Assembly (NCBI GenBank): GCA_002269645.1
Contig: NIVC01000244.1
Span: forward strand, 1-64,000
Length of the DNA stretch: 64,000 nt
Source of the DNA: Macrostomum lignano
Lineage: Eukaryota
Direction of reading: 5' to 3'
Shown: one piece after another, positions 1,188 through 63,574 of the stretch
Layout: the number at the start of each line of letters is the position of its first letter
How positions within the stretch are numbered: the first letter of the stretch is position 1
Made by a program: the position numbers and the translations under genes
The notes under the pieces: model-generated
The model's database searches: none
Told to the model about the DNA's origin: nothing
Seen by the model: the letters and a program-made list of their open reading frames with translations, nothing else

Positions 1188-4100
1188 ATGGCCGACATAT
1201 TTGTTGGCTGCGAGTTTCCAACCTATCGCGAACTGCAGGCAGCGGCGGATTGCCTGTCTGACCCACTGGCAGCCGCCTAGTGAAGAGCACAGGCACCCGC
1301 AGCGCCGGCTGCCCACAATTCCATAGTCAAAGCGCCCTACATGCGCATTGATGAGGCCAGTTTGCGCTACAGCTTCCTTAACTTGGCCTGTCGCTGGCGC
1401 CAGACTGCCAGTTTGGCCTACGCGCCAAAGCCTGTCCGAAGCGCCAGGCGCTGGTTATTGTCCAGCTGTGCCTGGCGCACTCCGGACACGATTCCCCGGC
1501 CCTGTCGGCTGTCGGCCTGCGCGCTCTTGGCTCCATGGCGCTTCGGGAGGCCAGTCTGTGCGGCGACTTGCCAGCGGCGCGCCGCCTTCTGACTAGCGGC
1601 TATTCGGCCGACTCCGCCTGCCCCGCCACGGGCCTGGCGCCGTGCACTGGCGCGCTATCGGCTGTCAGCGGGCGCTATCCAGCCTACTGTTGAAGGCCGG
1701 CGCCGATCCCGGCCAGACTGATTCGGCGGACTGACGCCGAGAGATCGAGCTCGGGACCAAGCTACAATAGAGGCGCTGATGGTGGAACGACAGCCGTGCC
1801 TTAGTAGCAGCAGCGGGAGCTCCACGCCGACTGTGAGAAGAGCGGAGACACCGACCGCTGCTACGGCTTCCATCCAGGCTTCGTTCGCGGTGGAATCAGG
1901 CTCCGCTGGGGCTGACGTCACCGCTCCAGCGGCTCATGAGCAGCCGGATGCTGAGACTGCTGATGATGCTGAATCGCTGTCTACAATGGCCTGTCTGACT
2001 GTGCCTGATTCATCGTTGGCTTTGCCAACCACTCCGCAGGCGGATACCAGTCAGTTGACAGATGTGCGACCAAACAGCGCCAGGTGAGATTTTGGTCTCA
2101 ATTCCCACCCTAGTATGTAAGACCTATATATTATGTATAACAAAACCTACTTTTTTAATCGGGGTAGTTTGGCCTTAAATCTTATTTTTGTATCATTTAT
2201 AAGTATTGTCTATCCACAGATAGCTAAAACCTATCCGATGAGAGGTTGTGTCACAATATGCATCTATTTTGGCTCCTTTTTATTGAGACAGCCGGTATAT
2301 TGCGCTAAAAAACAGTTACAACAATTATTGATTTTTTTCTTTTCGCTTCCTCGCTCAAAATAACTGCTATTTTCTTTCCTTACTACTACTTGAATAGAAT
2401 CTTGAACCTAAGAGCCTTAAATTATTTAAAAATAGTATCCGTGCTCATAAAGGTCTATGTTTTATTGGGCCCAGGATTGCAACAAGTTCATAAGCTGTGC
2501 TTTGTGGGACTTCGTCTATAATATTATATATTACTATTATTATTGTATGCCAACTCACCATGGCAGTGGTCAATGACACCAATGCGTTCCCCATAGCCAC
2601 GACGAGGTAAAGCCGGAAAGGAAGTGAAAGAAAACAAAAGGAGAGAATGGAAGGCGAACAAGACAAAGGAAAAAAGCCAAATGCTTCCATAATTTACAGT
2701 GTGCGGGGATGAAGCACTGCTTCTGTGGCTCTGCTCTAGAGAAAGGAAGCCTAAAGGAGAAGCTGGGCTGTTTGCTGCTAGAACGGAGACCATTAGTGTG
2801 ATTGTGGACAGAGAGGAGCTGCTAGAGTTCACTGGAGCCTTTATTCTATAAGCATGATTTAATAAAATCTAATCCGTAACAACAGGCGTTCCAGCTCGAA
2901 TTGTGGCGGCGAAATCAGGCAGCAGCGTCTGCGGCAGCCGCATTGCTCAGCCGGCAGCGGCAGCAGGCGCCGGCGCTGCCTGACGCCGTTCGAAATCGAC
3001 CCCGAACGGCATTTGCGCTGTCCGGCCGCTGTCGCCGGCCATCCGACCGCGCTCCTTGCCGCTTGGCGGGCCGAGGCGCCTCGTTTATTGGCTGAACGAG
3101 TCGCCGCGGGTGCCAGCGGTGCTGCCGGGGCGAACAAGGCCAGCCTGATCTGCTGTTGGCAGTGCGCCGGCGCTCTGCTAACTGGCCTGGAGGCCGCCAC
3201 CGGGGCCAACCTGCTAGTGACTAACTCTGTGTCGATTGAGAGCTACTTATCCAGGCATCCGGGCTCTGGTAATTGCTGGTTGTCTGTTGATGGTATTGAA
3301 TTCAATAGCCAGTTACTATCAGTATCTGTTTTAGCTCGTTATGCGTCTAAACTCAGGGGTCGGCAAACCCCGGGTTTGTCTCTTCTCGGCTCTCTTCTGT
3401 CTCCTCTTCTCTCTTCTCTCTTCTCCTCTTCTCCTTCTCTCTTCTCCTCTTCTCTCTTCTCTCTTCTCCTCTCTTCTTCTCCTTCTCTCTTCTCCTCTTC
3501 TCTCTTCTCTCTTCCCTCTTCTCCTCTTCTCTTCTCTCTTCTCCTCTTCTCTCTTCTCTCTTCTCCTCTTCTCTCTTCTCCTCTTCTCTCTTCTCTCTTC
3601 CCTCTTCTCCTCTTCTCTTCTCTCTTCTCCTCTTCTCTCTTCTCTCTTCTCCTCTTCTCTCTTCTCCTCTTCTCTCTTCTCTCTTCTCCTCTTCTCTCTT
3701 CTCCTCTTCTCTCTTCTCTCTTCTCCTCTTCTCTCTTCTCCTCTTCTCTCTTCTCTCTTCTCTCTTCTCCTCTTCTCTCTTCTCCTCTTCTCTCTTCTCC
3801 TCTTCTCTCTTCTCTCTTCCCTCTTCTCCTCTTCTCTTCTCTCTTTCTCTTCTCTTCTTCTCTCTCTTCTCTCTTCTCTCTTCTCCTCTTCTCTCTTCTC
3901 TCTTCTCCTTTCTCTCTTCTCCTCTTCTCTCTTCTCTCTTCTCCTCTTCTCTCTTCTCCTCTTCTCTCTTCTCTCTTCTCTCTTCTCCTCTTCTCTTTCT
4001 CCTCTTCTCCTCTTCTCTCTTCTCCTCTTCTCTCTTCTCTCTTCTCTCTCTCTTCTCCTCTTCTCTCTTCTCTTCTCTCTTCTCCTCTTCTCTCTTCTCT

Positions 4101-7100
4101 CTTCTCTCTTCTCTCTTCTCTCTTCTCCTCTTCTTTCTTCTCCTCTTCTCTCTTCTCTCTTCTCCTGTTCTCTCTTCTCTCTTCTCCTCTTCTCTCTTCT
4201 CTCTTCTCTCTTCTCTCTTCTCCTCTTCTCTCTTCTCCTCTTCTCTCTTCTCTCTTCTCTCTCCTCTTCTCTCTTCTCCTCTTCTCTCTTCTCTCTTCTC
4301 CTCTTCTCTCTTCTCTCTTCTCTCTTCTCCTCTTCTCTCTTCTTCTCTTCTCTCTTCTCTCTTCTCCTCTTTCTTTCTCTTCTCCTCTTCTCTCTTCTCC
4401 TCTTCTCTCTTCTCTCTTCTCCTCTTCTCTCTTCTCCTCTTCTCTCTTCTCTCTTCTCTCTTCTCCTCTTCTCTCTTCTCTTCTCTCTTCTCCTCTTCTC
4501 TCTTCTCTCTTCTCTCTTCTCTCTTCTCCTCTTCTCTCTTCTCTCTTCTTTCTTCTCCTCTTCTCTCTTCTCTCTTCTCCTGTTCTCTCTTCTCTCTTCT
4601 CCTCTTCTCTCTTCTCTCTTCTCTCTTCTCTCTTCTCCTCTTCTCTCTTCTCCTCTTCTCTCTTCTCTCTTCTCTCTCCTCTTCTCTCTTCTCCTCTCTC
4701 TCTTCTCTCTTCTCTCTTCTCTCTTCTCTCTTCTCCTCTTCTCTCTTCTCTCTTCTCTCTTTTCTCTTCTCTCTTCTCTCTTCTCCTCTTCTCTCTTCTC
4801 TCTTCTCCTCTTCTCTCTTCTCCTCTTCTCTCTTCTCTCTTCTCTCTTCTCTCTTCTCCTCTTCTCTCTTCTCCTCTTCTCTCTTCTCTCTTCTCTCTCC
4901 TCTTCTCTCTTCTCCTCTTCTCTCTTCTCTCTTCTCCTCTTCTCTCTTCTCCTCTTCTCTCTTCTCCTCTTCTCTCTTCTCCTCTTCTCCTCTTCTCTCT
5001 TCTCCTCTTCTCTCTTCTCTCTTCTCTCTTCTCTCTTCTCTCTTCTCTCTTCTCTTCTCTCTTCTCCTCTTCTCTCTTCTCTCTTCTCTCTTCTCTCTTC
5101 TCCTCTTCTCTCTTCTTTCTTCTCCTCTTCTCTCTTCTCTCTTCTCCTCTTCTCTCTTCTCTCTTCTCCGCTTCTCCTCTTCTCTCTTCTCTCTTCTCTC
5201 TTCTCCTCTTCTCTCTTCTCCTCTTCTCTCTTCTCTCTTCTCTCTCCTCTTCTCTCTTCTCCTCTTCTCTCTTCTCTCTTCTCTCTTCTCCTCTTCTCCT
5301 CTTCTCTCTTCTCTCTTCTCCTCTTCTCTCTTCTCTCTTCTCCTCTTCTCTCTTCTCCTCTTCTCTCTTCTCCTCTTCTCTCTTCTCCTCTTCTCTCTTT
5401 TCCTCTTCTCCTCTTCTCTCTTCTCCTCTTCTCTCTTTTCCTCTTCTCTCTTTTCCTCTTCTCTCTTTTCCTCTTCTCTCTTCTCTCTTCTCCTCTTCTC
5501 TCTTCTCTCTTCTCCTCTTCTCTCTTCTCTCTTCTCCTCTTCTCCTCTTCTCTCTTCTCCTCTTCTCCTCTTCTCTCTTCTCTCTTCTCCTCTTCTCTCT
5601 TCTCTCTTCTCCTCTTCTCTCTTCTCCTCTTCTCTCTTTTCCTCTTCTCTCTTTTCCTCTTCTCTCTTCTCTCTTTTCCTCTTCTCTCTTCTCTTCTCTC
5701 TTCTCTCTTCTCCTCTTCTCTCTTCTCTCTTTTCCTCTTCTCTCTTTTCCTCTTCTCTCTTCTCTCTTCTCCTCTTCTCTCTTCTCTCTTCTCTTCTTTC
5801 TTCTCTTCTCTCTTCTCTTCTCTCTCCTCCCCTTCTCTCTTCTCCTCTTCTCATCTCTCGCTGTACACCCTGTGTGAGCGTGTATGAGTGCCGTGCCTGC
5901 GTACAGTATTAGAGGGCTTGTATTGTGCTCAGGAGTCAGCGGAATGGGCAGAATTGCCTCAGCGATCTCGTCGAAGGCGTTAGGCCAGGGTGTCCGCAGC
6001 CTTGCCATTGTTGTGAGGCCTCCCATCTTCTAGCTTTCTTATTGTAGCAAGTCCGCTATCTTCCCAGTGTGACCCATTGTTTTGACATCGCTATCCCCCC
6101 AAATTCCCCATTTTCATCGGTTAAAATAATTTTTTTACTGTCTTTCAAAATTTCACAGGTAGATTGGCCGATCTAATTCATCTAAAATATGCCCAGGTGT
6201 TTGTGCTGTGCGATCATTCGCCTAGGCTGGGCCATCGCAGGCCTACTAGGCTGCCCAGGGCCAGGCTGAACTGTCCATTTCAGCTGGTGCTACGCCTTGC
6301 CGCTGCTCAGCGGGCTCTGTACGTGGCGGCTCACAGCAGTTTGGAGCACAACCATCCTGTGGGCAGGTGAGATTTTTGGCCGCTATCTGCCAGTGTCCAT
6401 TGTAGTGAGGCCGCTATCTGCCAGTGTCCATTGTAGTGAGGCCGCTATCTGCCAGTGTCCATTGTAGTGAGGCCGCTATCTGCCAGTGTCCATTGTAGTG
6501 AGGCCGCTATCTGCCAGGGTCCATTGTAGTGAGGCCGCTATCTGCCAGTGTCCATTGTAGTGAGGCCGCTATCTGCCAGTGTCCATTGTAGTGAGGCCGC
6601 TATCTGCCAGTGTCCGTTGTAGTGAGGCCGCTATCTGCCAGTGTCCGTTGTAGTGAGGCCGCTATCTGCCAGTGTCCATTGTAGTGAGGCCGCTATCTGC
6701 CAGTGTCCGTTGTAGTGAGGCCGCTATCTGCCAGTGTCCATTGTAGTGAGGCCGCTATCTGCCAGGGTCCATTGTAGTGAGGCCGCTATCTGCCAGTGTC
6801 CATTGTAGTGAGGCCGCTATCTGCCAGTGTCCATTGTAGTGAGGCCGCTATCTGCCAGTGTCCATTGTAGTGAGGCCGCTATCTGCCAGTGTCCGTTGTA
6901 GTGAGGCCGCTATCTGCCAGTGTCCATTGTAGTGAGGCCGCTATCTGCCAGGGTCCATTGTAGTGAGGCCGCTATCTGCCAGTGTCCGTTGTAGTGAGGC
7001 CGCTATCTGCCAGTGTCCATTGTAGTGAGGCCGCTATCTGCCAGTGTCCATTGTAGTGAGGCCGCTATCTGCCAGTGTCCGTTGTAGTGAGGCCGCTATC

Positions 7101-9084
7101 TGCCAGTGTCCATTGTAGTGAGGCCGCTATCTGCCAGTGTCCATTGTAGTGAGGCCGCTATCTGCCAGTGTCCATTGTAGTGAGGCCGCTATCTGCCAGT
7201 GTCCGTTGTAGTGAGGCTGCTATCTGCCAGTGTCCATTGTAGTGAGGCCGCTATCTGCCAGTGTCCATTGTAGTGAGGCCGCTATCTGCCAGTGTCCATT
7301 GTAGTGAGGCCGCTATCTGCCAGTGTCCATTGTAGTGAGGCCGCTATCTGCCAGTGTCCATTGTAGTGAGGCCGCTATCTGCCAGTGTCCATTGTAGTGA
7401 GGCCGCTATCTGCCAGTGTCCGTTGTAGTGAGGCCGCTATCTGCCAGTGTCCATTGTAGTGAGGCCGCTATCTGCCAGTGTCCATTGTAGTGAGGCCGCT
7501 ATCTGCCAGTGTCCGTTGTAGTGAGGCCGCTATCTGCCAGTGTCCATTGTAGTGAGGCCGCTATCTGCCAGTGTCCATTGTAGTGAGGCCGCTATCTGCC
7601 AGTGTCCATTGTAGTGAGGCCGCTATCTGCCAGTGTCCGTTGTAGTGAGGCCGCTATCTGCCAGTGTCCATTGTAGTGAGGCCGCTATCTGCCAGTGTCC
7701 GTTGTAGTGAGGCTGCTATCTGCCAGTGTCCATAATTGAGAGGCCGCTTTCTCCCATGATCCCTAATTGTGAGGCCGCTATCTGCCATGATCCCCAATTG
7801 TGAGGCCGCTATCTGCCATGATCCCCAATTGTGAGGCCGCTATCTGCCATGATCCCCAATTGTGAGGCCGCTATCTGCCATGATCCCCAATTGTGAGGCC
7901 GCTATCTGCCATGATCCCTAATTGTGAGGCCGCTATCTGCCATGATCCCCAATTGTGAGGCCGCTATCTGCCATGATCCCTAATTGTGAGGCCGCTATCT
8001 GCCATGATCCCTAATTGTGAGGCCGCTATCTGCCATGATCCCTAATTGTGAGGCCGCTATCTGCCATGATCCCTAATTGTGAGGCCGCTATCTGCCATGA
8101 TCCCTAATTGTGAGGCCGCTATCTGCCATGATCCCTAATTGTGAGGCCGCTATCTGCCATGATCCCTAATTGTGAGGCCGCTATCTGCCATGATCCCTAA
8201 TTGTGAGGCCGCTATCTGCCATGATCCCTAATTGTGAGGCCGCTTTCTCCCAGCGTCCCCAAGTATGAGGCTGCCCCAGGCACACATGTACACACGAGCC
8301 GCAAACCACAGCATCGCCGACCCTACTGAAACCGCCTGCCCGCAGGCCAGCCGACCGGCTCAGCCGCCGGGTTGGCTACAGCCGTCTCGGCACCCAACGC
8401 TTGCAGCCGTCGAGGTCGTCGCAGCCTCGGTCACCACCACCGGAGGATGTCGGCGTCGATTTCAACCTGGCCGACGGAGACTCCGCCGTCGACGACACCG
8501 AAGGCGTGGCCAACATTGGCGTCTGCTTTGACTTGGCCGCCGCCGATGACCAACGGCGTAGAATGAAGACAGCCTACCCCATTGTGCCGTTCGCGCCGCC
8601 AGAGATGCGTATAGTAAAGTTTATGGCTATGGGATTTCGTCAGGATGGGCGCCAAGATGAAGCTACGCAGCAGGTGCTGCAGCAGCGTCCAAGGCCGCCG
8701 AGGAAACCGCAGCAGCAGCAGCAGCCGTCGCCGTGGCCGGCTGCTTCAGTCCGTTGGAGCGATCGAGCGGCCGGGTTTCCCGTGCTAAAAGTTTATCGCG
8801 GCGGAGCGGCACAAAGCGGAGCCGCTGTCCCGGCTGTTGTGACTGCCGTTCCGGGCCGATGCGGTGCAGCTCAGCAGCAGCCGGGTGTCTCCCAGAGACC
8901 TGGTGCGCTCAGCCTGTTGGCAACTGCTCAGAAGCAGCCAGTTGATCCTCAGATTCAGAAGCTCTGGGACATCGGCGAGTCCGACTTAACGGCAGCTACA
9001 GATTCCGCGGCCACGGCCGACAGTCCGTCTGAAGTGGCCGGATCCGACTTGTCCGCTTGGATTGTCCGCCTGTCTGACAGTTGA
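1188..9084 (+). CDS. Putative protein with two ZSWIM3-N/FAR1-like Zn-finger modules and ankyrin repeats, 4 exons; exon 1 frameshifted
   Basis: Exons ~1188-2083, 2886-3268, 6159-6366, 8280-9084, joined by GT-AG introns in phases 2, 1, 2. Exons 2+3 splice to SIESYLSRHPGSGRLADLIHLKYAQVFVLCDH...LNCPFQLVLRLAAAQRALYVAAHSSLEHNHP (C..C..HxH). Exon 1 needs several 1-nt corrections to read MADIFVGCEFPTYREL...LRYSFLNLAC...DCQFGLRAKACPKRQALVIVQLCLAHSGH followed by the ankyrin-like LREASLCGDLPAARRLL...GLAP(L)HW...LLLKAGADPGQTDSA(G)LTP. Confidence 0.62.
3378..5858 (+). repeat. 2.5-kb polypyrimidine/polypurine (CTCTT/CTC)n tract in intron 2 of gene 1
   Basis: Almost exclusively C/T on the + strand; G appears only around 3400, 4168, 4582 and 5170. 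Confidence 0.98.
5858..5975 (+). mobile_element. SINE family B 3' fragment (a further fragment lies at ~59380-59510)
   Basis: cgctgtacaccctgtgtgag...gtgcctgcgtac...gctcaggagtcagcggaatgggcag aligns with the reverse complement of 56360-56460 and with ccgctgtacaacctgtgtgagtg...gatcagcggaattggca at 59432-59500. Confidence 0.55.
6378..8250 (+). repeat. 31-bp minisatellite filling intron 3 of gene 1, in two sub-arrays
   Basis: About 43 copies of tgaggccgctatctgcca+gtgtccattgtag, then about 16 copies of tgaggccgctatctgcca+tgatccc(c/t)aattg. Confidence 0.97.
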
Positions 9085-9429: not shown

Positions 9430-10495
9430 AAGATCCCCAGTTGCTGGGCCAGCCTCCCAGATCCTCAGTTGCCGGGCCAGCCTCCCAAATCCTCAGTTGC
9501 CAAGCCAGCCTCCCAAATCCTCAGTTGCTGGGCCAGCCTCCCAGATCCTCAGTTGCCGGGCCAGCCTCCCAGATCCTCAGTTGCTGGGCCAGCCTCCCAG
9601 ATCATCAGTTGCTGGGCCAGCCTCCCAGATCATCAGTTGCTGGGCCAGCCTCCCAGATCATCAGTTGCTGGGCCAGCCTCCCAGATCAGCTGGGCCATCC
9701 TCCCAGATCAGCTGGGCCAGCCTCCCAGATCAGCTGGGCCAGCCTCCCGGATCCTCAGTTACTGGGCCAGCCTCCCAGATCCTCAGTTGCTGGGCCAGCC
9801 TCCCAGATCCTCAGTTGCTGGGCCAGCCTCCCAGATCCTCAGTTGCTGGGCCAGCCTCCCAGATCCTTAGTTAACTGGGCCAGCCTCCCAGATCCTCAGT
9901 TGCTAAGCCAGCCTCCCAGATCCTCAGTTGCTAAGCCAGCCTCCCAGATCCTCAGTTGCTAAGCCAGCCTCCCAGATCCTCAGTTGCTGGGCCAGCCTCC
10001 CAGATCCTCAGTTGCCGGGCCAGCCTCCCAGATCCTCAGTTGCTGGGCCAGCCTCCCAGATCATCAGTTGCTGGGCCAGCCTCCCAGATCATCAGTTGCT
10101 GGGCCAGCCTCCCAGATCATCAGTTGCTGGGCCAGCCTCCCAGATCATCAGTTGCTGGGCCAGCCTCCCAGATCATCAGTTGCTGGGCCAGCCTCCCAGA
10201 TCATCAGTTGCTGGGCCAGCCTCCCAGATCATCAGTTGCTGGGCCAGCCTCCCAGATCAGCTGGGCCAGCCTCCCAGATCAGCTGGGCCATCCTCCCAGA
10301 TCAGCTGGGCCAGCCTCCCAGATCAGCTGGGCCAGCCTCCCAGATCAGCTTGGCCAGCCTCCCAGATCCTCAGTTGCTGGGCCAGCCTCCCAAATCCTCA
10401 GTTGCCGAGCCAGCCTCCCAAATCCTCAGTTGCTGGGCCAGCCTCCCAAATCCTCAGTTGCTGGGGCAGCCTCCCAGATCCTCAGTTACTGGCCC
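9430..10495 (+). repeat. 28-bp minisatellite (gatcctcagttgctgggccagcctccca)
   Basis: Period 28, with 22-bp deletion variants. Confidence 0.95.
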
Positions 10496-11400: not shown

Positions 11401-12184
11401 GGTATTTTTCAGGACAGGAATTTTTCAGGGTTCACCCAGTCTCAGGTTGTTAATTATGGGGAGGTAAGCGCATGTGTCGCCGCAGATGTGTGAGCAGTTA
11501 AACGCATTAGAACAAAACCAAATTCAATCTAGTTATTTAAACCACAAAATTTGCTATAGTCTACAATTATTTCAAATTGTTTACGCTCGTATTAGTACAC
11601 AAATTCCAAACTCGCTACTTATAGTAAGCCACTGCAAGTTCTACGAGCGTGGTTGCCTCACCTTGTGGCCCTATATATTTATTAATTGGTGACACCTGTG
11701 AAAAATAATTTTTACAGGTAAATAATAACTTACATATTGCTGCACAGTATGTTCTGGTTTATTATATGCTTTATTTGCCCCGTGCTCCCCGAGTTCAATT
11801 TTTCCTGAATATCATGCGACATCACGAGCGGGTCGAATAATTGGAGAAGTGGGGGATAAAAATGAATAATTCATCCGTTTTAGGCGGTTTGAGCCTGTCC
11901 GAGAAATTCACTAGCAGTAACTAACTAACTGGGGTGACAGCTGCAATACAAAATTCTAAATTATCTCTTTAGTGGCAGCACATCAGCTAAGATATACGCT
12001 CGTAGGATGAGGCCACTACATAAGTTGAGCAAAGTAAAGAGCTACTTAAGCTTTAAATGAGATTGCAAAGCGCTTAGAATTTTTCCTGCATGTACATTAA
12101 AGAGCTGGTGCCACGAAAACGTCTGCAAATCCGCTTGGAAAACTAAATTCAGTTTCGAGGGATTTAGAGGGCTTCAAGGGTGTA

Positions 12185-15100
12185 GACAGACAGACCTTAG
12201 ACACAGGTGATAAAGTGACTGGCAGACAGACAGTGACACAGGTGAAAAAGTGACAGGCAGACAGACAGTGACACAGGTGAATAAGTGACTGGCAGACAGA
12301 CAGTGACACAGGTGAATAAGTGACTGGCAGACAGACAGTGACACAGGTGAATAAGTGACTGGCAGACAGACAGTGACACAGGTGAATAAGTGACTGGCAG
12401 ACAGACAGTGACACAGGTGAATAAGTGACTGGCAGACAGACAGTGACACAGGTGAATAAGTGACTGGCAGACAGACAGTGACACAGGTGAATAAGTGACT
12501 GGCAGACAGACAGTGACACAGGTGAATAAGTGACTGGCAGACAGACAGTGACACAGGTGAATAAGTGACTGGCAGACAGACAGTGACACAGGTGAATAAG
12601 TGACTGGCAGACAGACAGTGACACAGGTGAAAAAGTGACAGGCAGACAGACAGTGACACAGGTGAATAAGTGACTGGCAGACAGACAGTGACACAGGTGA
12701 AAAAGTGACTGGCAGACAGACAGTGACACAGGTGAATAAGTGACTGGCAGACAGACAGTGACACAGGTGAATAAGTGACTGGCAGACAGACAGTGACACA
12801 GGTGAATAAGTGACTGGCAGACAGACAGTGACACAGGTGAATAAGTGACTGGCAGACAGACAGTGACACAGGTGAATAAGTGACTGGCAGACAGACAGTG
12901 ACACAGGTGAATAAGTGACTGGCAGACAGACAGTGACACAGGTGAATAAGTGACTGGCAGACAGACAGTGACACAGGTGAATAAGTGACTGGCAGACAGA
13001 CAGTGACACAGGTGAATAAGTGACTGGCAGACAGACAGTGACACAGGTGAATAAGTGACTGGCAGACAGACAGTGACACAGGTGAATAAGTGACTGGCAG
13101 ACAGACAGTGACACAGGTGAATAAGTGACTGGCAGACAGACAGTGACACAGGTGAATAAGTGACTGGCAGACAGACAGTGACACAGGTGAATAAGTGACT
13201 GGCTGACAGACAGTGACACAGGTGAATAAGTGACTGGCAGACAGACAGTGACACAGGTGAATAAGTGACTGGCAGACAGACAGTGACACAGGTGAATAAG
13301 TGACAGACAGTCAGACCTTAGACACAGGTGAATAAGTGACTGGCAGACAGACAGTGACACAGGTGAATAAGTGACAGACAGTCAGACCTTAGACACAGGT
13401 GAATAAGTGACTGGCAGACAGACAGTGACACAGGTGAATAAGTGACTGGCAGACAGACAGTGACACAGGTGAATAAGTGACTAGCAGACAGACAGTGACA
13501 CAGGTGAATAAGTGACTGGCAGACAGACAGTGACACAGGTGAATAAGTGACTGACAGACAGACCTTAGACACAGGTGAATAAGTGACTGACAGACAGACC
13601 TTAGACACAGGTGAATAAGTGACTGACAGACAGACCTTAGACACAGGTGAATAAGTGACTGACAGACAGACCTTAGACACAGGTGAATAAGTGACTGACA
13701 GACAGACCTTAGACACAGGTGAATAAGTGACTGGCAGACAGACAGTGACACAGGTGAATAAGTGACTGGCAGACAGACAGTGACACAGGTGAATAAGTGA
13801 CAGACAGTCAGACCTTAGACACAGGTGAATAAGTGACTGGCAGACAGACAGTGACACAGGTGAATAAGTGACTAGCAGACAGACAGTGACACAGGTGAAT
13901 AAGTGACTGGCAGACAGACAGTGACACAGGTGAATAAGTGACAGACAGTCAGACCTTAGACACAGGTGAATAAGTGACAGGCAGACAGACAGTGACACAG
14001 GTGAATAAGTGACAGACAGTCAGACCTTAGACACAGGTGAATAAGTGACTGGCAGACAGACAGTGACACAGGTGAATAAGTGACAGACAGACAGACCTTA
14101 GACACAGGTTAATAAGTGACTGGCAGACAGACAGTGACACAGGTGAATAAGTGACAGACAGACAGACCTTAGACACAGGTGAATAAGTGACAGGCAGACA
14201 GACAGTGACACAGGTGAATAAGTGACTAGCAGACAGACAGTGACACAGGTGAATAAGTGACTGGCAGACAGACAGTGACACAGGTGAATAAGTGACAGAC
14301 AGACAGACCTTAGACACAGGTGAATAAGTGACTGGCAGACAGACAGTGACACAGGTGAATAAGTGACAGGCAGACAGACAGTGACACAGGTGAATAAGTG
14401 ACAGACAGACATACCTTAGACACAGGTGAATAAGTGACTGGCAGACAGACAGTCACACAGGTGAATAAGTGACTGGCAGACAGACAGTGACACAGGTGAA
14501 TAAGTGACTGGCAGACAGACAGTGACACAGGTGAATAAGTGACTGGCAGACAGACAGTGACACAGGTGAATAAGTGACTGGCAGACAGACAGTGACACAG
14601 GTGAATAAGTGACTAGCAGACAGACAGTGACACAGGTGAATAAGTGAGTGGCAGACAGACAGTGACACAGGTGAATAAGTGACAGACAGTCAGACCTTAG
14701 ACACAGGTGAATAAGTGACTGGCAGACAGACAGTGACACAGGTGAATAAGTGACTAGCAGACAGACAGTGACACAGGTGAATAAGTGACAGACAGACATA
14801 CCTTAGACACAGGTGAATAAGTGACTGGCAGACAGACAGTCACACAGGTGAATAAGTGACTGGCAGACAGACAGTGACACAGGTGAATAAGTGACTGGCA
14901 GACAGACAGTGACACAGGTGAATAAGTGACTGGCAGACAGACAGTGACACAGGTGAATAAGTGACTGGCAGACAGACAGTGACACAGGTGAATAAGTGAC
15001 TGGCAGACAGACAGTGACACAGGTGAATAAGTGACTGGCAGACAGACAGTGACACAGGTAGACAGAGTGACACTGGCAGATAGAGTGACACAGGTAGACA

Positions 15101-15522
15101 GTGACACTGGCAGACAGACAGAGAGATACAAACAGAGTGACACTGGCAGACAGTCCGAGTGACACTGGCAGACAGGCAGAGTGACACTGGCAGACAGGCA
15201 GAGTGACAATAGCAGACAGGCAGAGTGACAATAGCAGACAGGCAGAGTGACACTAGCAGACAGGCAGAGTGACACTAGCAGACAGGTAGAGTGACAATAG
15301 CAGACAGGCAGAGTGACACTGGCAGACAGGCAGAGTGACACTAGCAGACAGGCAGAGTGACACTAGCAGACAGGCAGAGTGACAATAGCAGACAGGCAGA
15401 GTGACACTAGCAGACAGGCAGAGTGACACTAGCAGACAGGTAGAGTGACAATAGCAGACAGGCAGAGTGACAATAGCAGACAGGCAGAGTGACACTAGCA
15501 GACAGGCAGAGTGACACTGGCA
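12185..15522. repeat. 35-bp minisatellite (about 80 copies) grading into a related 22-bp array
   Basis: gacacaggtgaataagtgactggcagacagacagt to ~15060, then ggcagagtgacactagcagaca up to the donor at 15528. Confidence 0.97.
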
Positions 15523-15528
15523 GCTCAC

Positions 15529-16315
15529 CCGCCGTATAAAAGACCCCCTTGGCGGCCAGGAAGACCACAGCCAGGACTGCCAGCAGCACGGCGGTCAGGT
15601 AGACGCCAACCAGGGCCCGCTGGCGCAGCTTCTTTCGCCTGACGCGTCGCTGCTCTTCCGGCGAGTCCGGCGTCAGCCTCGAGTCCACGTGCAACTCAGC
15701 AGCGGCAGACTCGGCGCAGCCGGTTGCCGCCAGCTGTTGCTGCGTTGACGAAGCGACAGAGGCTGCCAACGAGCGGATCGACGCCTCGATGTGCTGCCGC
15801 TGCTGCCGGAGCTGCTGTAGCTGACGCAGCTCGTCGTCGTCCTCGTCGCCGTGGTAATTGGCGAGGTTTCCGTCGACCGTGTCGTTTGGCAGAGTCAGCA
15901 GAAACGACGGCGGCGTCAGAGTCCGGCCGCCAGTTGACGGCGTCGGCGTTGCCGAATTTGACGACGGCGGGGGCGGCTCGGCCAGCCGGAGGACCCGCAG
16001 GCGCGGGCAGCCGGCGGCCAGGTGCGCCTCCGCCGCGGACGCTGGGTGGTGCAGCTCCACAGAGCCGCCAATGTCACCGGAGCCACCCAGCAGCGACCGG
16101 GAAGCCGACAGGTTCTCGGCCCGGTGGCGCTCCTTGCTGTGCTCGCTGTGCGCGAACCGGAAGCCGCCGCCTGCAGATGAAGATCCGGCGGACGCCCCTC
16201 CAGTTGCCGCCGACACAGAGCCAGCCACAGAGGAGGGCCGCCGGCCGCTGCCGCCGCCGCTACCGCCGCCGCCGCCTCCTCGACCAGCTGAGCCAGTCCA
16301 CAGTGAGGTCTGCAT
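15529..16315 (-). CDS. First coding exon of an uncharacterised single-pass membrane protein (low-complexity N-terminus, C-terminal TM helix)
   Basis: ATG at 16315 opens a 262-codon GC-rich frame. It ends RRVRRKKLRQR-ALVGVYLTAVLLAVLAVVFLAA-KGVFYTA, then a GTGAGC donor at 15528 (phase 1). A tentative last exon at 10970-10939 (acceptor atttcag) would add EVSGKEHHHD*. Confidence 0.65.
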
Positions 16316-20222: not shown

Positions 20223-20838
20223 TACTTTACATGAAACACATCAATAGCGGAAGGGATCCAGTGGATGAGAGTAACTGTTGAATAGTAAAAAGCATTCTAA
20301 ATATAAAGATAATAAAAAAAACAAGGCTGAGAGCCCTGAAGCGACTAGAAAACCTTTGCAGTTCGGACTAGAGAGAGAGAGCGCGCGCAGCTGCAAACGA
20401 TAGGAACAGCATTTAGGATATTCACAATGCATGATTGACTCTAACAAATTGAAATATGGATCACAGACTGTGTAAAAATAATTCGTGCGAAATGACTTTA
20501 GCTAAGATAAATAAACTGTACAAAATTCGCTGCGCACCTACTTATAGTAGTAGAATGCTTTAGGTCAGTAATACGCCATCTCTATATGCATAAGTTAGTT
20601 TAGCAAGCTCAGGGATTGAATAACACAGAAATTAATAAAAAAACAGACTCACTTAATGCGGATACAAGTTTAAAAAAACCAGAGTATTTTTAACATCACA
20701 GCAGCGTTATCGGTGGACCGGCGTTATCGGTGGACTTCATGCACCGGCTTTGCCTATGACAGTCGAGTGTGAACTAACTGACTTTGGAAAGCTTTTATCT
20801 TAATGAAGTCTAGAGTGATTGCACATTCTGACCGCAGC

Positions 20839-21442
20839 CACTGAGGATCTGGGAGGCTGGCCCAGCAACTGAGGATCTGGGAGGCTGGCCCAGCAACTGA
20901 GGATCTGGGAGGCTGGCCCAGCAACTGAGGATCTGGGAGGCTGGCCCAGTAACTGAGGATCTGGGAGGCTGGCCCAGCAACTGAGGATCTGGGAGGCTGG
21001 CCCAGCAACTGAGGATCTGAGAGGCTGACCCAGCAACTGAGGATCTGGGAGGCTGGCCCAGCAACTGAGGATCTGGGAGGCTGGCCCAGTAACTGAGGAT
21101 CTGGGAGGCTGGCCCAGCAACTGAGGATCTGGGAGGCTGGCCCAGCAACTGAGGATCTGGGAGGCTGGCCCAGCAACTGAGGATCTGGGAGGCTGGCCCA
21201 GCAACTGAGGATCTGGGAGGCTGGCCCAGTAACTGAGGATCTGGGAGGCTGGCCCAGCAACTGAGGATCTGGGAGGCTGGCCCAGTAACTGAGGATCTGG
21301 GAGGTTGGCCCAGCAACTGAGGATCTGGGAGGCTGGCCCAGCAACTGAGGATCTGGGAGGCTGGCCCAGCAACTGAGGATCTGGGAGGCTGGCCCAGCAA
21401 CTGAGGATCTGAGAGGCTGACCCAGCGACTGAGGATCTGGGA
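20839..21442 (-). repeat. 28-bp minisatellite, reverse complement of the 9430-10495 array
   Basis: ctgaggatctgggaggctggcccagcaa, about 21 copies, starting about 10 nt after the predicted par-3 stop. Confidence 0.95.
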
Positions 21443-21452
21443 GACAGGCGAT

Positions 21453-27400: not shown

Positions 27401-30400
27401 GGGTGCGGGATGGATAGAGAGAAAGTTGAAGAGGAAAGAAAAAGCGCAACACTATACTGATGCTGCTGTTTGTGCCGCTGAAGCAGGTTCCCTTTTGCTT
27501 TTTTGTTCAGAATGCTTTAAACAACACTATTTTTACACTCATGCGGTTTATTACCGCAATAGTCAATACTCTAATATACAATTTGTTATAATCCAGTGCA
27601 ATCTCCACCCCCTGCTGAGCCGAACTAGCTTAATTAGCCTAACCTATATCCATTGCAAAATAAATAGATAGACATGAACTCAACAAAAGACAACAGATGC
27701 TCAACTCAATAAATGTAGCAGCAAAAAGAGAAAAATATCGCATCAGTTAGACACCAGGTACTGACTAAATGTGAGCCTCGGCATAAACTGAATGGAACTC
27801 ACTGGAGGCAAAGGAGGCGGCTGTTGCTTTTGCTGTTGCTGTTGCTGCTCCTGCTGTTGCTGCTGCTGCTGAGCTGTGGGCGATGCCAGATGACTGTTCT
27901 CCTCGCTAGAGGCGGAAGTCGATGCCGCAGTCGGTCGACCCTCGGCCAGGGCCGGCAGCAGCGGCGGCGAGTGGTGCACATCAGCGCTGACTGTGACGCT
28001 GCCGCTGCTGCCAACGCTGCTGACTGTGTTGATGCTAGACGCAGGTGGCCAACCGCTGGAGCCGGAGTCCTGCTGCTGATGGTGCCTGCCGTGCTGCGCC
28101 CGCCAGTGCTGCTGGGAGCCCGGCTGCTGCCTCAGCTGACGCCTGGCAATGGACAGGCGGAGGCAGCCGCCCGGGCCGCCGCATTCGCGGATTGCTCGAC
28201 GCAGAGTGGCCGTCGCTTCCGTGTTGTTGACGCCTTCCAGCGAGTAGCCGTTCACGGACAGCAGCTGGTCGTTCTCGCGGAGCCGGCCATCCTGTACAAG
28301 GAGTTCCAGAGACAGCTTTCTGCATGAGGTCATGACCCCGCTGACCCCAGTATCTGCCAGTCTGAGGTCATGACCCCGCTGAACCCAGTGTCTGTCAGAT
28401 ACTGCCAGTCTGAGGTCATGACCCCGCTGACCCCAGTGTCTGTCAGATACTGCCAGTCTGAGGTCATGACCCCGCTGACCCCAGTGTCTGTCAGATACTG
28501 CCAGTCTGAGGTCATGACCCCGCTGGCCGCTGGCCACAGTGTCTGTCAGATACCGCCAGTCCGAGGTCATGACCTCGCTGATCCCAGTGTCTGTCAGATA
28601 CTGCCAGTCTGAGGCCATGGCCTCGCCATAAAACTCAGGGTGCCATAAAGGCCACGAACCTTGTAAGCGGCGCCTCCACTGATGACGCTTTTCACAAAGA
28701 CGCCGCGGCCGCCGGAGTCGCTGCTGGCGCTGCCATTGCTGCCGCTCGACAACGGCAAAGATTTGACGCTGACGCCAAGGCTACCAGCCGCAGCATCAGC
28801 CAGCGGGATGTCCAAGTTCAGTACCAGCCGGTCGGTGTCCTGGGCTGAGCTTGCCGTTGAGGATGCGGCCGCTGCCGCTGCCGCCAATCCAGCGAATGGT
28901 TCGCCAATGTCAGCTGCCAGGCCCAGATACTGCTGGAGGGGGGAGTTGGAATGCTGAATGACTGACTGACTGACTGACTGCCTGCCTGCCTGACTGACTG
29001 ACTAACTGGCTGGCTGACTGACTGACTGACTGACTGACTGACTGACTGCCTGCCTGACTGCCTGACTGGCTGACTGACTGACTGCCTGACTGACTGCCTG
29101 ACTGGCTGACTGACTGACTGCCTGATTGACTGACTGACTGACTGACTGACTGACTGACTGCCTGCCTGCCTGCCTGACTGACTGACTGACTGACTGCCTG
29201 CCTGACTGCCTGACTTGCTGGCTGACTGACTGACTGACTGACTGACTGACTGACTGCCTGCCTGACTGGCTGACTGGCTGACTGACTGCCTGACTGACGA
29301 ATATCAAAATCCAAATGATCAATTCCTAATTGAAACTCATAACAAAGGGCAGCTGGGAATAACTAATCAAAAGACTCAGAATTCCGCGCATAGTGACTAA
29401 TGCCTGCGCATCTGGTGCTGCAAGTGAAATTCAGGCCTGAATAAAGTAAGATCCGAAACCATATCCATATCAACATCCATATCGTTATACTCGCACATTT
29501 ATGATGGCATCTTCTTTTTTGCCTAATTTGAAAAATTTCAAAATTGGCAATGCTCATTAAAACGCGATGGGAGTACATATGCCGTATGTATATATATATA
29601 ACGCTCATACATATATCTATAAAGCTGTAAGAATCGCATGCAATAGTAATGACCTACCAATCATCTCACGAACGCAGACTGTCCACTCACTCCTTTACTG
29701 CCTCTGTCATTCACTCTCTTCCCCGCATCTGTCACTCACTACTTCACCGCATCTGTCACTCCTACTTCACTGCATCTGTCACTCACTACTTCACCGCATC
29801 TGTCACTCACTACTTCACCGCATCTGTCACTCATTCTCCCGCATCTGTCACTCATTCTCCCGCATCTGTCACTCACTACTTCACCGCATCTGTCACTCAC
29901 TACTTCACCGCATCTGTCACTCACTACTTCACCGCATCTGTCACTCATTCTCCCGCATCTGTCATTCACTACTTCACCGCATCTGTCACTCACTACTTCC
30001 CCGCATCTGTCACTCACTCTCTTCCCCGCATCTGTCACTCACTACTTCACCGCATCTGTCACTCACTACTTCACCGCATCTGTCACTCATTCTCCCGCAT
30101 GTCACTCACTACTTCACCGCATCTGTCACTCATTCTCCCGCATTTGTCACTCACTCCTACTTCGTACTGGCCTACGTACGACGCACTACGGCCTACGGAA
30201 AGTCGCTCTCACCGACTTTTCCCGACATGTCACTGTCTTTCCCCCATTTATATATTCGTGTTTGCGATTTGCACTTTTCTGCGTGTACATGGTTTGATCT
30301 TTCTTATTCAAGCGCACTCTTATGTACAGTGCAGCCGTTTCCGTCCTAGGTATGGGGGCTGGCTTGAGCCCCATGCTTAAAATATGTCTCGCACGGTGCA

Positions 30401-33400
30401 TGGTTTGATGCGAAGATTGTGTCGCAAGTGCGTGCCTTTGACTTGTCATTTAATACGAAGATACGAAGCGAATGTGTTTTATGACGTGGCGTGGCTATTC
30501 ATCATGGCAAATCCAGTCTCGGCCCGGCTGCACCAGACACAGCAGAAACACGCAAAAAGCGCTTCTACGGCGCGTCCCTGCTGAATAGCCAGTTTGCGCG
30601 CAAATAATCTCGCATCAGTCCGCCGACGTGCCCTTTCATCGCACCCTTCCGCACTTTTATCCCGCACTGTGTGCTGTATATGCGATTCACTGATTTCAAA
30701 ATAGATTCGCCTTGAACCGCCTGCCTCCCACTGCTGCCTGGATCCGCGAAGTGGATTACGAAGGGAAGTTGAAAGGAACATGGCTTTGTAGAGCTGGCTG
30801 ACAGATACAGATTGCTAGCATATGACTGTCCATACGTCTGTCTTATGTGTCTGCTCGTCTGTCTGTCGTTATGCCTGTCTGCCTCTCCAGTCATTCAGTC
30901 AGTCTGTCTTAGCATTTTGATGTTTGTCTTAGTGTCTTAGTGTCTTAGTGTCAGTCTGTCTGTCTGTCTGTCTGTCTGTCTGTGTCTGTCTGTCTGAATC
31001 TATTAGCCAGTCCCCCCAGGCTTGTGCCAAGCTTAATGAGATAACAACTACACTTAACTTCCCTTATCACAATGAATCTCATTTAGAGCAGCCTCAAGCA
31101 ACCGAACGCTAGTTGCTCTAATGCTGCATTGTAGACCAAAGACCGGACGATAGGCCAAGAGCGAGGAAAACTGATAGCTTACCCGAAGCCAATGGAGAGG
31201 CAAGAGAGGAAAAACAGGAAGTAATTTGGCGCACAAATTTTTGCCCCGCTCGGAGGCAAAGCAGCTATCGAGAAAAAATCCAGCGGCACATATCGGGGGG
31301 CAGTGCGGATTATTAGGGGAAATATATTTTTCTGCGCACGAAACAACTGAATCGAACGGAAGACCAACGGAAGGTCAGCTGTCTCCGCCCTCGGCTTGTA
31401 CAGCCAGCCATTGCGGGCACTTAGCGAACTAGGGGGGGGGGGGGGCAGACCCATAATTAAATTCCAATGCATAGCGCGGCCTAAACTGCAATAGCATTAT
31501 GCAGATATAATTTGCCAAAGCAGTTTATTATGCCTACTGTTGCACTCCCTGACAGTGAAAAAAAACTTCAGGGAGCTTTTTTCTGTCATTGTGAATGAGC
31601 GATATGCTAGCCTTTAAGCTTTCAGGATTGCAGGGCAGTTCAGCAACAAAATGCAAGTCTTTTAAACTCCCACTTGACCTCTTGTGTCTGTTAAACCTTG
31701 ACTTGACTTTAATAAGCTAAGACAACAATCGTACAAGAGCCTTCTTGAACTTGCTGCCCTAAAGTTCCCCCGAAATGCATAAACAAAGACAGGTAACTAT
31801 AATGTTAACAATATCTTTTTTGAGTTTATTGATGGCTCGATTTTATTACAAATCAACTACGAATTCAGTTTGTATATATAGATGGGAATTACTATTACAC
31901 CTAAACCCAATGGGAGCCGGTTGCTAAAGAGACTAAAGGGAGTAGGTTACGGATAGTCTAGTAGGGAGTGGTTTCCTAAGGGAGTAGTTTCCTAAGGGAG
32001 TAGTTTCCTAAGGGAGTAGTTTCCTAAGGGAGTGGTTTCCTAAGGGAGTGGTTAACTAAGGGAGTGGTTTCCTAAAGAATGGTTTCCTAAGAGAGTGGGT
32101 GGTTTTCAAAGGGAGTGGGTGGTTTCCTAAGAGAGTGGGTGGTTTCCTAAGAGAGTGGGTGGTTTCCTAAGGGAGTGGGTGGTTTCCTAAGAGAGTGGGT
32201 GGTTTCCTAAGAGAGTGGGTGGTTTCCTAAGAGAGTGGGTGGTTTCCTAAGGGAGTGGGTGGTTTCCTAAGAGAGTGGGTGGTTTCCTAAGAGAGTGGGT
32301 GGTTTCCTAAGGGAGTGGGTGGTTTCCTAAGAGAGTGGGTGGTTTCCTAAGAGAGTGGGTGGTTTTCTAAGGGATTGGGTGGTTTCCTAAGAGAGTGGGT
32401 GGTTCCCTAAGGGAGTGGGTGGTTTCCTAAGAGAGTGGGTGGTTTCCTAAGGGATTGGGTGGTTTCCTAAGAGAGTGGGTGGTTTCATAAGGGAGTGGTT
32501 GGTTTCCTAAGAGAGTGGGTGGTTTCCTAAGGGAATGGTTTCCTATAAGGGAGTAGGTTCGCATTCCTGCTAGACAGACGGGCTTAGTCTATGTATAAAT
32601 ACTAGTTTGAGCCAGCCACCATCAACTCGCGCCTCTCCTCTCCTAGCTCCCTACTCATCCACCCGCCCATCCAGCTACTAGATTTCATTAAGGTGCTTTT
32701 CGAGACTGCAAGGCTCATTAGTCATAAGCCGGTGAGGAGGAGCTGAGACGGCTAACTAAGCCACCCTAATCGGGGGAGGCGTAGAGGCGGTGGGCCGCTG
32801 TCTAAATGCTCATTATCGGGGGTCGGAGGCACTGCCGCTGCCCGCAATTAGTTGTAGGCCGGGGCCGCAGCACGCAAGCCGCTAGAGCTGGTGCAGCCAG
32901 TCACACACAGACAGAGAGGGGATTTCAAATCGCATGGGAAATGCAAACCATTAAAGGGTTAAAGGCAGACCGAACCTATAGAGGTGTTTCCTAATTTCCT
33001 AGAAGCTTGGTTCGGTCCTCCCGACGAATTAGGGATCAGAGAAATAAGCTAGGCGCGGAGGATAAGCCAATTTAAGCATTGCAATCACGCGTTGGAAAAT
33101 TCTGGCGTTTTATCCAGTCCATGCAGCTGGCGTTTTATCCAGTCTATGCAGATAGCGCCTTATCCAGTCTATGCAGCTGGCGCCTTATCCAGTCTACGCA
33201 GCTGGCGCCTTATCTAGTCTATGCAGCTGGCGCCTTATCCAGTCTATGCAGCTGGCGCCTTATCTAGTCTATGCAGCTGGAGCCTTATCTAGTCTATGCA
33301 GCTGGCGCCTTATCTAGTCTATGCAGCTGGCGCCTTATCCAGTCTATGCAGCTGGCGCCTTATCCAGTCTATGCAGCTGGCGCCTTATCCAGTCTATGCA

Positions 33401-47379: not shown

Positions 47380-49044
47380 TGATTGCTGCAGAATCTGCTG
47401 CCGCTTCTGCGTTTGCTCTTCTCCAAGTCTGCAAGCAACCGCAGCTCCGTGAGCATCCCAAGAGTTTGATCTGGAGAATTTGTGCTCAGATCTGCAATTA
47501 TGGCAGTGAAAAAATCATATAACTGAACGTTGAACTTGTTGTTGCTTAGGAAACTATAAATTAAATATTAAACTAAATTTGAATTTGGCAACTGCCATGA
47601 AAAATTGTACTTAGCCTCTGATACCAGATTGGTCAAACCAAGGTTTCATTAGCGATTTAAATTTCTACACATAGAAGAATAGATACAAGAGACACATACA
47701 AACAACTCATTTTAAGTATATGGATTTAATATTTTTCATTTTAATATATATATGGGAAAATTTAAGATTTACCAATCATTTTTTTTTGTTTGGGATTTTC
47801 ACTGAATTGTTTTAAACAGCAAGGAGATTGTATATACCTTAGCATACTTCAAACATCATTGTTACACAACTGGCAAAAGGCATTACTATATATTCTACTA
47901 ACTCCCTTGAGTAGGCACACACAAAGGAATGTATAGCAACCTTCACTATATTTTTAAGGCATATACAAGTCTTGGGAGTTGTATTTCTTAGCTTTTATAG
48001 CTAAGCTAACTTGGCTTTCAAAGGCATTAATTATAACTAATTAATAACTAATTAATATAAGCAATTAGACCTAAGCCAAAATTCCAATTTAGCTTCAAAA
48101 GTAATTTGATTGCACTTTGAATTGAGCCAAGGCTACTAGCACATAAGAGGCATGCTAGAGCACTAGGTTACTAGCCACTTTTGATGTTGTCATGCTTAGT
48201 CTCTAGTTTCTAGCATAAATTGCTAGGTAGTTATAAAATTTATGACAATATATCAATTAGGATTTTATTAACAAAAAAAGTTAATGCATAAAGATTTGAT
48301 GTTAACAACAATGAATATTTTCACTTAACAACTAGTATTTTACTTAGCAAAAATCCTATTTTAATGAGAAGTATACTTTTTGCAAAAAAATTAATAAATA
48401 AATACCTAAAGCACCTTTTGCAGAAAACACGCTTTTAATCAAGTAGCATTATTGTCAAATTAAATATTACTTATTGCCAAAAAGAAAAATTTCATTAAGT
48501 GGGAAATCACTTAAAGTGACAAATAACCATTCAACATTATATTTTAAGAAATTTATATTAATAATAAACCTTTACAATTAGAAGTATAAAAAACCTAATT
48601 ATAATCCTTAAATCATAGGATTATAGAATATAAGTTTAAATCCTAAACCCAAGGCCAAAGTTTTTACTGAATTTAACTTATATATATTTATTATTAAAAA
48701 TAATATAATGCAAAAACATTAAAAATATCAATATTAAATTAAAAAATATCATTTTAAATTTGAGTAATAAGGATTAATAAATTACTTAACAAGAATAATA
48801 TAGATAAGCTATTTTCTAGGGTTTATAAGTCATTGTAAATATGATTGTAAGCAAAACTTTAATTTTATTTTAATTATTATGCTATTATTTACTTGTCTTT
48901 ATTGATTTATACTATTATTAAAATAATTTTGTTTTATTTTATTTAGCTTAACAATTCAATATAAAAATATTGATATAGTTATAGCTATAAGTCTATAAAA
49001 AAGCATTAAACTTTTATATTTCTTTAGCCATTGGGCATAGGATA

Positions 49045-54367: not shown

Positions 54368-63574
<9,207 letters not shown>

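Follow-up and report, generated by a model that had tools for sequence, protein, structure and literature searches.

ZSWIM3 and ZSWIM1 are vertebrate proteins which derive from transposases of Mutator-like elements (MULEs) and bear the N-terminal domain PF21599 (ZSWIM3_N), and FAR1 (PF03101) is the DNA-binding domain of plant FHY3/FAR1/FRS proteins and of MULE transposases. The ankyrin fold, in turn, has protein binding as its general role. For the WRKY-GCM1 superfamily, two metal-chelating dyads and a four-stranded sheet have been described (Babu et al. 2006, PMC1702500). Here we analyse a gene of the flatworm Macrostomum lignano, located on the plus strand at positions 1188-9084 of a 64,000-nucleotide stretch (hereafter called the window), which constitutes the first 64 kb of the 552-kb contig NIVC01000244.1 of assembly Mlig_3_7 (GCA_002269645.1). 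A preliminary description of this DNA had proposed a hidden spliced gene, joining two MULE-type Cys/His modules (modules 1 and 2 below) to ankyrin repeats, with neither a DDE nor a SWIM domain. The gene proved not to be hidden, as it is already in GenBank under PAA87197.1 (hypothetical protein BOX15_Mlig016874g2, 544 amino acids), with a coding sequence (CDS) at 1779-9084. We find that the gene is transcribed and restricted to this lineage, that the genome carries four copies of it, and that its product has a short ankyrin block and lacks a transposase core. On balance, we slightly favour the view that its product is a lineage-restricted ankyrin protein in which residues ~384-495 (module 2) are a possible, highly diverged zinc-binding module. 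What is new here is the corrected full-length model and the candidate assignment of module 2; the gene as such and its ankyrin region were already present in public databases.

A four-exon gene with an N-terminally truncated GenBank model

Exon 1 occupies positions 1188-2083, with an ATG at 1188, a donor GT at 2084 and an in-frame ATG at 1779, from which the GenBank CDS starts. It is followed by intron 1 (2084-2885, GT..AG) and by exon 2 (2886-3268), which is a 100% match to PAA87197.1 and encodes an Arg/Ser/Ala-rich linker and then, from 3136, the start of module 2. A CT-rich tandem array (3390-5852) fills intron 2 (3269-6158; 2,890 bp). The core of module 2 (...YAQVFVLCDH...NCPFQLVLRL...LEHNHPVG) is encoded by exon 3 (6159-6366), the DNA of which is identical in all four genomic copies. 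In intron 3 (6367-8345), a minisatellite with a unit of 31 bp spans 6378-8258 in about 61 copies, and exon 4, as annotated, extends from 8346 to the stop codon TGA at 9082-9084 and encodes a Pro/Gln/Ala-rich tail, in which no domain was recognised and no Pfam match was obtained. Within this exon, at 8580-8680, there is a hydrophobic stretch with M-G-F (peptide PPEMRIVKFMAMGFRQDGRQDEATQQVLQQ) that visually resembles the loop of a UBA domain; it gave no Pfam UBA match.

By tblastn of the annotated proteins, the GT-AG borders were confirmed for 1188-2083, 2886-3268 and 6159-6366. Of the splicing proposed previously, the first two junctions and the third donor thus stand, and the third acceptor had to be moved: its AG is at 8344-8345 and the exon starts at 8346, 66 nt 3' of the proposed 8280. 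PAA87197.1, PAA87201.1 and A0A1I8HFD8 (the latter from the older ML2 assembly) all read ...HNHPVGR|PADRLSRR at the exon 3/4 junction. As both acceptors are in frame, 8280 may be at most a minor alternative. The junction phases, 2/1/2, hold on the 899-nt exon 1 of the intact copy and on its 896-nt counterpart in the window (net -3), and module 2 is indeed split by the 2.9-kb CT-tract intron, the peptide being as quoted earlier, with ...SRHPGS|GRLADL... read across intron 2. It should be mentioned that Mlig_3_7 is a Canu (PacBio) assembly, polished by Pilon with Illumina and RNA-seq reads, and that its annotation was built from a genome-guided RNA-seq transcriptome using StringTie and TACO, which gives transcript support to the annotated junctions (PMC5730564).

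The indels suspected in exon 1 were found as well. Compared with the intact paralogue at locus L002, the window copy carries seven one-base indels, at 1262, 1312, 1391, 1642, 1668, 1683 and 1726, and because their net change is -3, the frame of exon 1 recovers. Since exon 1 is frameshifted 5' of the ATG at 1779, the GenBank CDS begins only there. The entire 742-codon frame, that is module 1, the ankyrin region, the linker, module 2 and the tail, is held by L002, which lies inverted on the same contig at 146,782-175,694, ~150 kb from the window copy, and encodes PAA87201.1 (766 amino acids; P0005). Our result is chiefly an annotation correction: the GenBank model is N-terminally truncated, owing to probable consensus indels, and the paralogue supplies the full-length product. 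This intact product of 742 residues is rich in Ala, Ser, Arg and Pro and is probably mostly disordered.

Ankyrin repeats are present and a transposase core is absent

The ankyrin-repeat region, at 1526..1781 of the plus strand, corresponds to residues ~114-199 and to ~2-3 repeats, and in the window it is cut by the indels at 1642, 1668, 1683 and 1726. In A0A1I8HFD8 (P0001; 655 amino acids), a UniProt entry named ‘ANK_REP_REGION domain-containing protein’, Pfam Ank (PF00023) scores 24.2 bits against a cut-off of 21.1. For the isolated segment, the scores are 33.1 against 22.7 for Ank_4 (PF13637), 30.3 against 21.1 for Ank and 27.3 against 27.3 for Ank_2 (PF12796). In a PDB sequence search, residues 136-221 of PAA87201.1 align over 70-85 residues to DARPins, ankyrin-1 and ankyrin-2, with E values from 6e-36 (many-repeat targets) to about 1e-9. 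The ankyrin repeats of the preliminary description are thus well founded, being above the Pfam cut-offs in intact copies and aligned to solved ankyrin/DARPin structures; at least two consecutive repeats of ~33 residues are confirmed, and they form the one recognisable fold of the intact protein. When the stitched, X-joined translation of the window was searched, Pfam returned no match, ankyrin included, because the frameshifts cut the repeats. The block would most likely serve as a protein-binding surface.

As to a transposase core, neither A0A1I8HFD8 nor PAA87197.1 has a Pfam match to the MULE DDE/RNaseH-like core (PF10551, PF21056) or to the SWIM zinc finger (PF04434), and the control ZSWIM3 proteins do carry PF21056. 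As there are no Pfam matches beyond ankyrin, the absence of DDE/MULE and SWIM domains noted earlier is upheld. A homology search with the conceptual product (E ≤ 0.01) retrieved only PAA87197.1 and A0A1I8HFD8, both from M. lignano. When the 119 residues of module 2 were used as query of a word-indexed protein search, no match was returned at E ≤ 10, not even PAA87197.1, which contains them exactly; this is probably a limit of the method with short queries and no indication of absence.

Differences among the copies were also considered from the point of view of coding. The ankyrin match falls within the 742-codon frame of the intact copy. Across the four copies, the variable codons account for 16 synonymous and 15 nonsynonymous changes, and the ratio of nonsynonymous to synonymous changes per site (pN/pS) is 0.16-0.51, depending on the region; between the window and L002 there are nine of each kind (pN/pS 0.35). 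Module 2 shows one synonymous and no nonsynonymous change, and together with exon 3 it is the least variable part of the gene. These values, although based on small counts, point to constraint.

Four near-identical copies share a neighbourhood

Besides the window copy and L002, the gene is found in near-identical form at two further loci (L003 and L004), and the 90% cluster of PAA87197.1 contains three further GenBank proteins, namely PAA87201.1 and those encoded on contigs NIVC01000242.1 (P0003) and NIVC01000243.1 (P0004). Exon 1 is intact in all three, as it is in A0A1I8HFD8. The exons are 98-100% identical among the four copies, and the introns differ in length as their repeat arrays vary: intron 2 measures 2890 bp in the window, 4466 bp in L002, 2927 bp in L003 and 2929 bp in L004, and intron 3 measures 1979, 1359, 1421 and 1980 bp, respectively. 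One small difference concerns splicing. At window position 2879 (L002 11752), an A-to-G change in the paralogue makes an AG six bases 5' of the exon-2 acceptor, and PAA87201.1 has two extra residues at the start of exon 2 (NSASNRRSSS versus NSARRSSS). The transcript assembly thus appears to have captured an acceptor shift specific to L002.

Positions 1-22939 of the window are colinear, in reverse, with 8881-28912 of L002, in BLAST pieces that are 92-96% identical, and the duplicated block therefore comprises at least 23 kb, including introns and flanks. This colinearity fits the duplicated blocks reported for Mlig_3_7, which amount to 180 Mb at ≥95% identity (PMC5730564). The block at the contig start could represent a genuine segmental duplication in inverted orientation, or else a homeologous haplotype joined in error. 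Upstream of the gene, another gene is called in L002, L003 and L004, with matches to cathepsin-type families in L002 and L003 (Inhibitor_I29, and in L002 also Peptidase_C1); the window begins at the contig end, which places this gene out of view. Downstream, a 266-residue gene on the opposite strand is called in the window copy and in L003. Hallmarks of a mobile element were not seen, in that the copies share their neighbourhood (no search aimed at terminal inverted repeats was made). The common gene neighbourhood, with the colinear block of at least 23 kb, led us to reject the idea that the gene is itself a transposon.

Module 2 as a candidate zinc-binding module

Module 2 (3136-3268 and 6159-6366) is a compact, basic (pI 9.7) Cys/His region, in which the arrangement C-x20-C-P-F ... 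H-N-H fits the canonical order and spacing. We compared it with ZSWIM3_N by means of proteins retrieved with an approximate ZSWIM3 query. This retrieved seven proteins, of which three contain PF21599 (P0006-P0008), and the resulting family profile is consequently thin. A Smith-Waterman alignment of module 2 with the mammalian ZSWIM3_N (P0006) covers the whole domain in register, with a score of 36 and z = 3.1. The forward scores of module 2, from a hidden Markov model (HMM) built on these three sequences and from phmmer, exceed 99.6-99.9% of those of shuffled sequences (p 0.0008-0.004; 5,000 shuffles by single residue and 5,000 by blocks of six residues), and when the ZSWIM3_N HMM is run along the full protein, its top score falls on the module-2 windows. 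The signature C-x10-30-C-[PA]-[AFWY]-x-hydrophobic-x-hydrophobic-x8-25-H-x-H was composed post hoc; when all six frames of the window are translated, it is matched once, namely in exon 3, and its frequency in shuffled proteins is 5e-5.

A joint profile of module 2, module 1 and ZSWIM3_N had one sequence match in the PDB, the iron-regulated transcription factor Aft2 (PDB 4LMG), where the stretch ACPFRIRAAY...KWNVVVMNNIHSHE is aligned with NCPFQLVLRL...ALYVAAHSSLEHNHP of module 2, spanning CPF...HxH. We take the DNA-binding domain of Aft2 to be of the WRKY-GCM1 fold; the match, at E = 1.1, equals what chance would give for a search of this size and is treated as a hint only. With module 2 alone, the PDB sequence search did not retrieve Aft2 and gave two chance-level matches (E about 0.8). 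A BTB protein, matched by a profile of ZSWIM3_N only, was discarded as spurious.

An AlphaFold model of module 2, obtained from a five-row alignment with ZSWIM3_N and module 1 rows, reached a predicted local distance difference test (pLDDT) score of 54 and a predicted template modelling (pTM) score of 0.45. It contains a helix (4-22) and four strands (26-38, 51-62, 83-92 and 97-105), with C62 ending one strand and C83 starting the next, on both sides of a long loop, and with HNH just past the last strand. A helix and a four-stranded sheet with such a ligand layout have been described for the WRKY-GCM1 superfamily (PMC1702500). Judging from its C...C-P-F...H-N-H arrangement, like that of FAR1/ZSWIM3_N (WRKY-GCM1) domains, module 2 might bind zinc and contact nucleic acid. 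That it is a diverged zinc module of the FAR1/ZSWIM3_N kind has, in our opinion, a roughly even chance of being right.

Alternative explanations for the Cys/His regions and the exon-1 indels

A number of results weigh against a zinc module in this protein. Apart from ankyrin, no Pfam family was matched at E ≤ 10, either by module 2 alone or within A0A1I8HFD8 and PAA87197.1, a negative for which the filters of HMMER set the threshold at roughly E > 0.1-0.25. The ZSWIM3_N profile was built on three sequences, the signature expression was written after the sequence had been seen, and hhalign of module 2 against ZSWIM3_N gives P = 0.048 and a probability of 1%. The earlier claim of a ZSWIM3_N-like module 2 is weakly supported by the in-register alignment and the shuffle scores, and it is not borne out by Pfam and hhalign. 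Single-sequence AlphaFold of PAA87197.1 was uninformative (pLDDT 35), and the model described above is partly circular because its alignment was seeded with ZSWIM3_N rows. When this model was compared with the PDB by Foldseek, as a check of the proposed WRKY/GCM1 fold, the 50 matches listed comprised neither WRKY nor GCM entries, and the best of them (E = 0.1) was a generic cystatin/Adhiron-like helix-on-sheet fold. Moreover, phmmer of PAA87197.1 against 1.84 billion representative proteins matches only itself, the copies have diverged too little for selection to be tested firmly, and a search of literature and supplements found no expression or functional data for the gene; the names Mlig016874, Mlig022608 and Mlig004464 are absent from the searchable literature and supplements of M. 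lignano papers. The missing Pfam matches and homologues, the negative Foldseek result and the low hhalign probability are all compatible with an orphan ankyrin protein, the rest of which would be fast-evolving and largely disordered, with C..CPF..HNH arising by chance in a Cys/His/Ala/Arg-rich, GC-rich coding sequence. In the same direction, single-sequence AlphaFold laid a helix over FQLVLRLAAAQRALYVAAHSS, and the motif was chosen after scanning ~128,000 codons, so that the modest p-values shrink on correction. However, the shuffle test was directed at a family named beforehand, and the alignment extends in register over the entire domain. The six frames contain the signature a single time, where it falls in a real exon and is read in the correct coding frame, and module 2 with exon 3 varies least among the copies. 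We regard an ankyrin protein devoid of any zinc module as somewhat unlikely. A more elaborate proposal, and in our view an improbable one, is that both Cys/His regions are MULE-type WRKY-GCM1 modules of a domesticated transposase from which the DDE and SWIM parts disappeared and to which ankyrin repeats were added. It can draw on the alignment, seeded model, shuffle scores and signature of module 2, and also on module 1 (1188..1501 of the plus strand, residues 1-105 of the intact protein), a Cys/His-containing region of no detectable family: in a MAFFT alignment, the C, C, H and H residues of the two modules share their columns with those of ZSWIM3_N, the N-terminus is the next-best region for the ZSWIM3_N HMM after module 2, though with a score of about 0, and module 1 starts with F-x-T-Y-x-E-L, which may be compared with F-K-T-Y-E-D-F of ZSWIM3. 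Against it, Pfam gave no match at E ≤ 10 for either module, be it to FAR1, ZSWIM3_N or another family (module 1 alone or in context), and the similarity of module 1 to ZSWIM3_N is not significant (shuffle p 0.14-0.29; hhalign P 0.24). Its spacing, C-x5-C ... H-S-G-H (H-x2-H), does not fit the canonical layout, it found no match in the PDB sequence search, and its resemblance to module 2 is not significant either (p 0.11-0.16, the value by phmmer with shuffles being 0.16; Smith-Waterman z = 1.4; BLASTP E = 23), which is why a by-eye idea of an internal duplication giving rise to both modules was dropped. Judged by these comparisons, module 1 is not demonstrably of the same kind as module 2, and the two MULE-type modules of the preliminary description are not sustained. 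As no relative forming part of a MULE element was present among the results of the homology search and phmmer, a transposon link is not demonstrated. A domesticated-transposase origin of module 2 is possible and should be taken as a lead rather than a result. We also think it quite unlikely that residues ~384-495, and perhaps 1-105, are a highly diverged WRKY-GCM1 module of the MULE/FAR1/ZSWIM3_N type that a flatworm-specific gene took up and combined with ankyrin repeats. If this were so, the protein would contain a domesticated transposase DNA-binding domain in an architecture uncatalogued for the WRKY-GCM1 superfamily, and it would act as a DNA-binding adaptor recruiting partners through its ankyrin block.

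A separate question is whether the indels in exon 1 are real, and here we consider residual PacBio consensus error in duplicated sequence to be the probable cause, rather than decay. One-base indels interrupt three of the four copies and also the ML2 model, and they differ from one to the next: the annotations of L003 and L004 are truncated because each of them has other isolated indels of this kind, and A0A1I8HFD8 leaves the reading frame of PAA87197.1 in exons 3 and 4. Between the window and L002, ~17 indel events and ~7 substitutions are found within positions 1-1730, whereas the 1,685 nt of coding sequence that follow 1736 show 20 substitutions and are free of indels. Such an indel-only pattern, different in each copy and here located less than 1.7 kb from the contig end, indicates consensus error. 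The competing explanation, which we find unlikely, is that the window copy is a truly decaying or 5'-truncated paralogue with real indels, so that the locus would yield only the product starting at ATG 1779, that is module 2 and the tail without module 1 and the ankyrin repeats. On one hand, the indels persist despite Pilon polishing with Illumina and RNA-seq reads (PMC5730564), the CDS in GenBank is annotated from 1779, intron 1 has a similar indel density between copies, and decay of redundant copies is to be expected in a neopolyploid genome; the intron in particular weighs against the error we propose, as it leaves room for the indels being real. On the other hand, indels and substitutions are distributed unevenly, as given above, nonsense substitutions are not seen, and the region lies close to a contig end. 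The other copies and the ML2 model also carry isolated one-base indels of their own, as is typical of consensus error when long reads cover duplicated sequence to which short reads cannot be assigned unambiguously.

Other features of the window

On the minus strand, at 27743-47379, the window contains a Par3 homologue, with Par3_HAL_N_term (E = 4.6e-20) at 46795-47379, PDZ exons at 46302-46772, 44537-45382 and 27743-28618, and introns full of minisatellites. An exon of a class C G protein-coupled receptor (Pfam 7tm_3, E = 3e-24) lies on the plus strand at 60983-61444. Such genes and the many minisatellites in introns are in keeping with an animal genome. One 28-bp minisatellite forms two inverted arrays, at 9431-10492 (plus strand) and 20835-21443 (reverse complement), which flank the region with the downstream gene annotated at 11682-16315. 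A 58-bp tandem repeat at 37031-38824 is unusually homogeneous (31 copies, 99% identity), and two microsatellites are very pure: (TGA), ~85 copies at 56036-56291, and (AGTC), 208 copies with 99% identity at 57276-58107. These give rise to long artificial open reading frames of poly-His, poly-Asp, poly-Ser and SVSQ. The G+C content falls sharply to 0.24 at 48001-50000, compared with 0.42-0.57 elsewhere in the window. No tRNA genes and no Rfam families were found in the 64 kb.

Comparison with known systems

If module 2 proved to be a genuine zinc module of the WRKY-GCM1/ZSWIM3_N type, this would add one more independent example of a host gene recruiting a transposase DNA-binding domain, and the first in which such a domain is joined to ankyrin repeats. 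To our knowledge, transposase domestications have been little studied in this animal lineage; transgenesis is established in M. lignano. With generic ankyrin scaffolds (PF00023/PF12796), the flatworm protein has in common that residues ~114-199 match the profiles and the solved structures, and it differs from them in that the repeats number only ~2-3, that no further domain can be recognised around them, and that the searches revealed no homologue beyond M. lignano. As regards the FAR1 domain, the likeness consists of a Cys pair followed by H-x-H around a predicted sheet of four strands that comes after a helix, and the LEHNHP ending of module 2 presumably resembles the ...HNH ending of the FAR1 type. 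Unlike FAR1 proteins, however, module 2 has no PF03101 match and no adjacent MULE or SWIM domains, and its fold is a predicted one. For the WRKY-GCM1 superfamily as a whole, the word ‘ankyrin’ is absent from the main text of its description (PMC1702500). The closest comparison is with ZSWIM3. Here, the flatworm protein lacks the RNaseH-like PF21056 and the SWIM finger PF04434, in place of which it has ankyrin repeats, and its module 2 remains below detection by the ZSWIM3_N family of Pfam and by hhalign. Nevertheless, module 2 and ZSWIM3_N (P0006) can be aligned in register over ~80 residues with ~20% identity, and what they share runs through the whole domain: Y-x-Q-V-x-x-[VL]-C at a strand end, a basic loop of ~20 residues, C-P-[AF]-x-L-x-L, and then L-x-[VI] and [EQ]-H-x-H.

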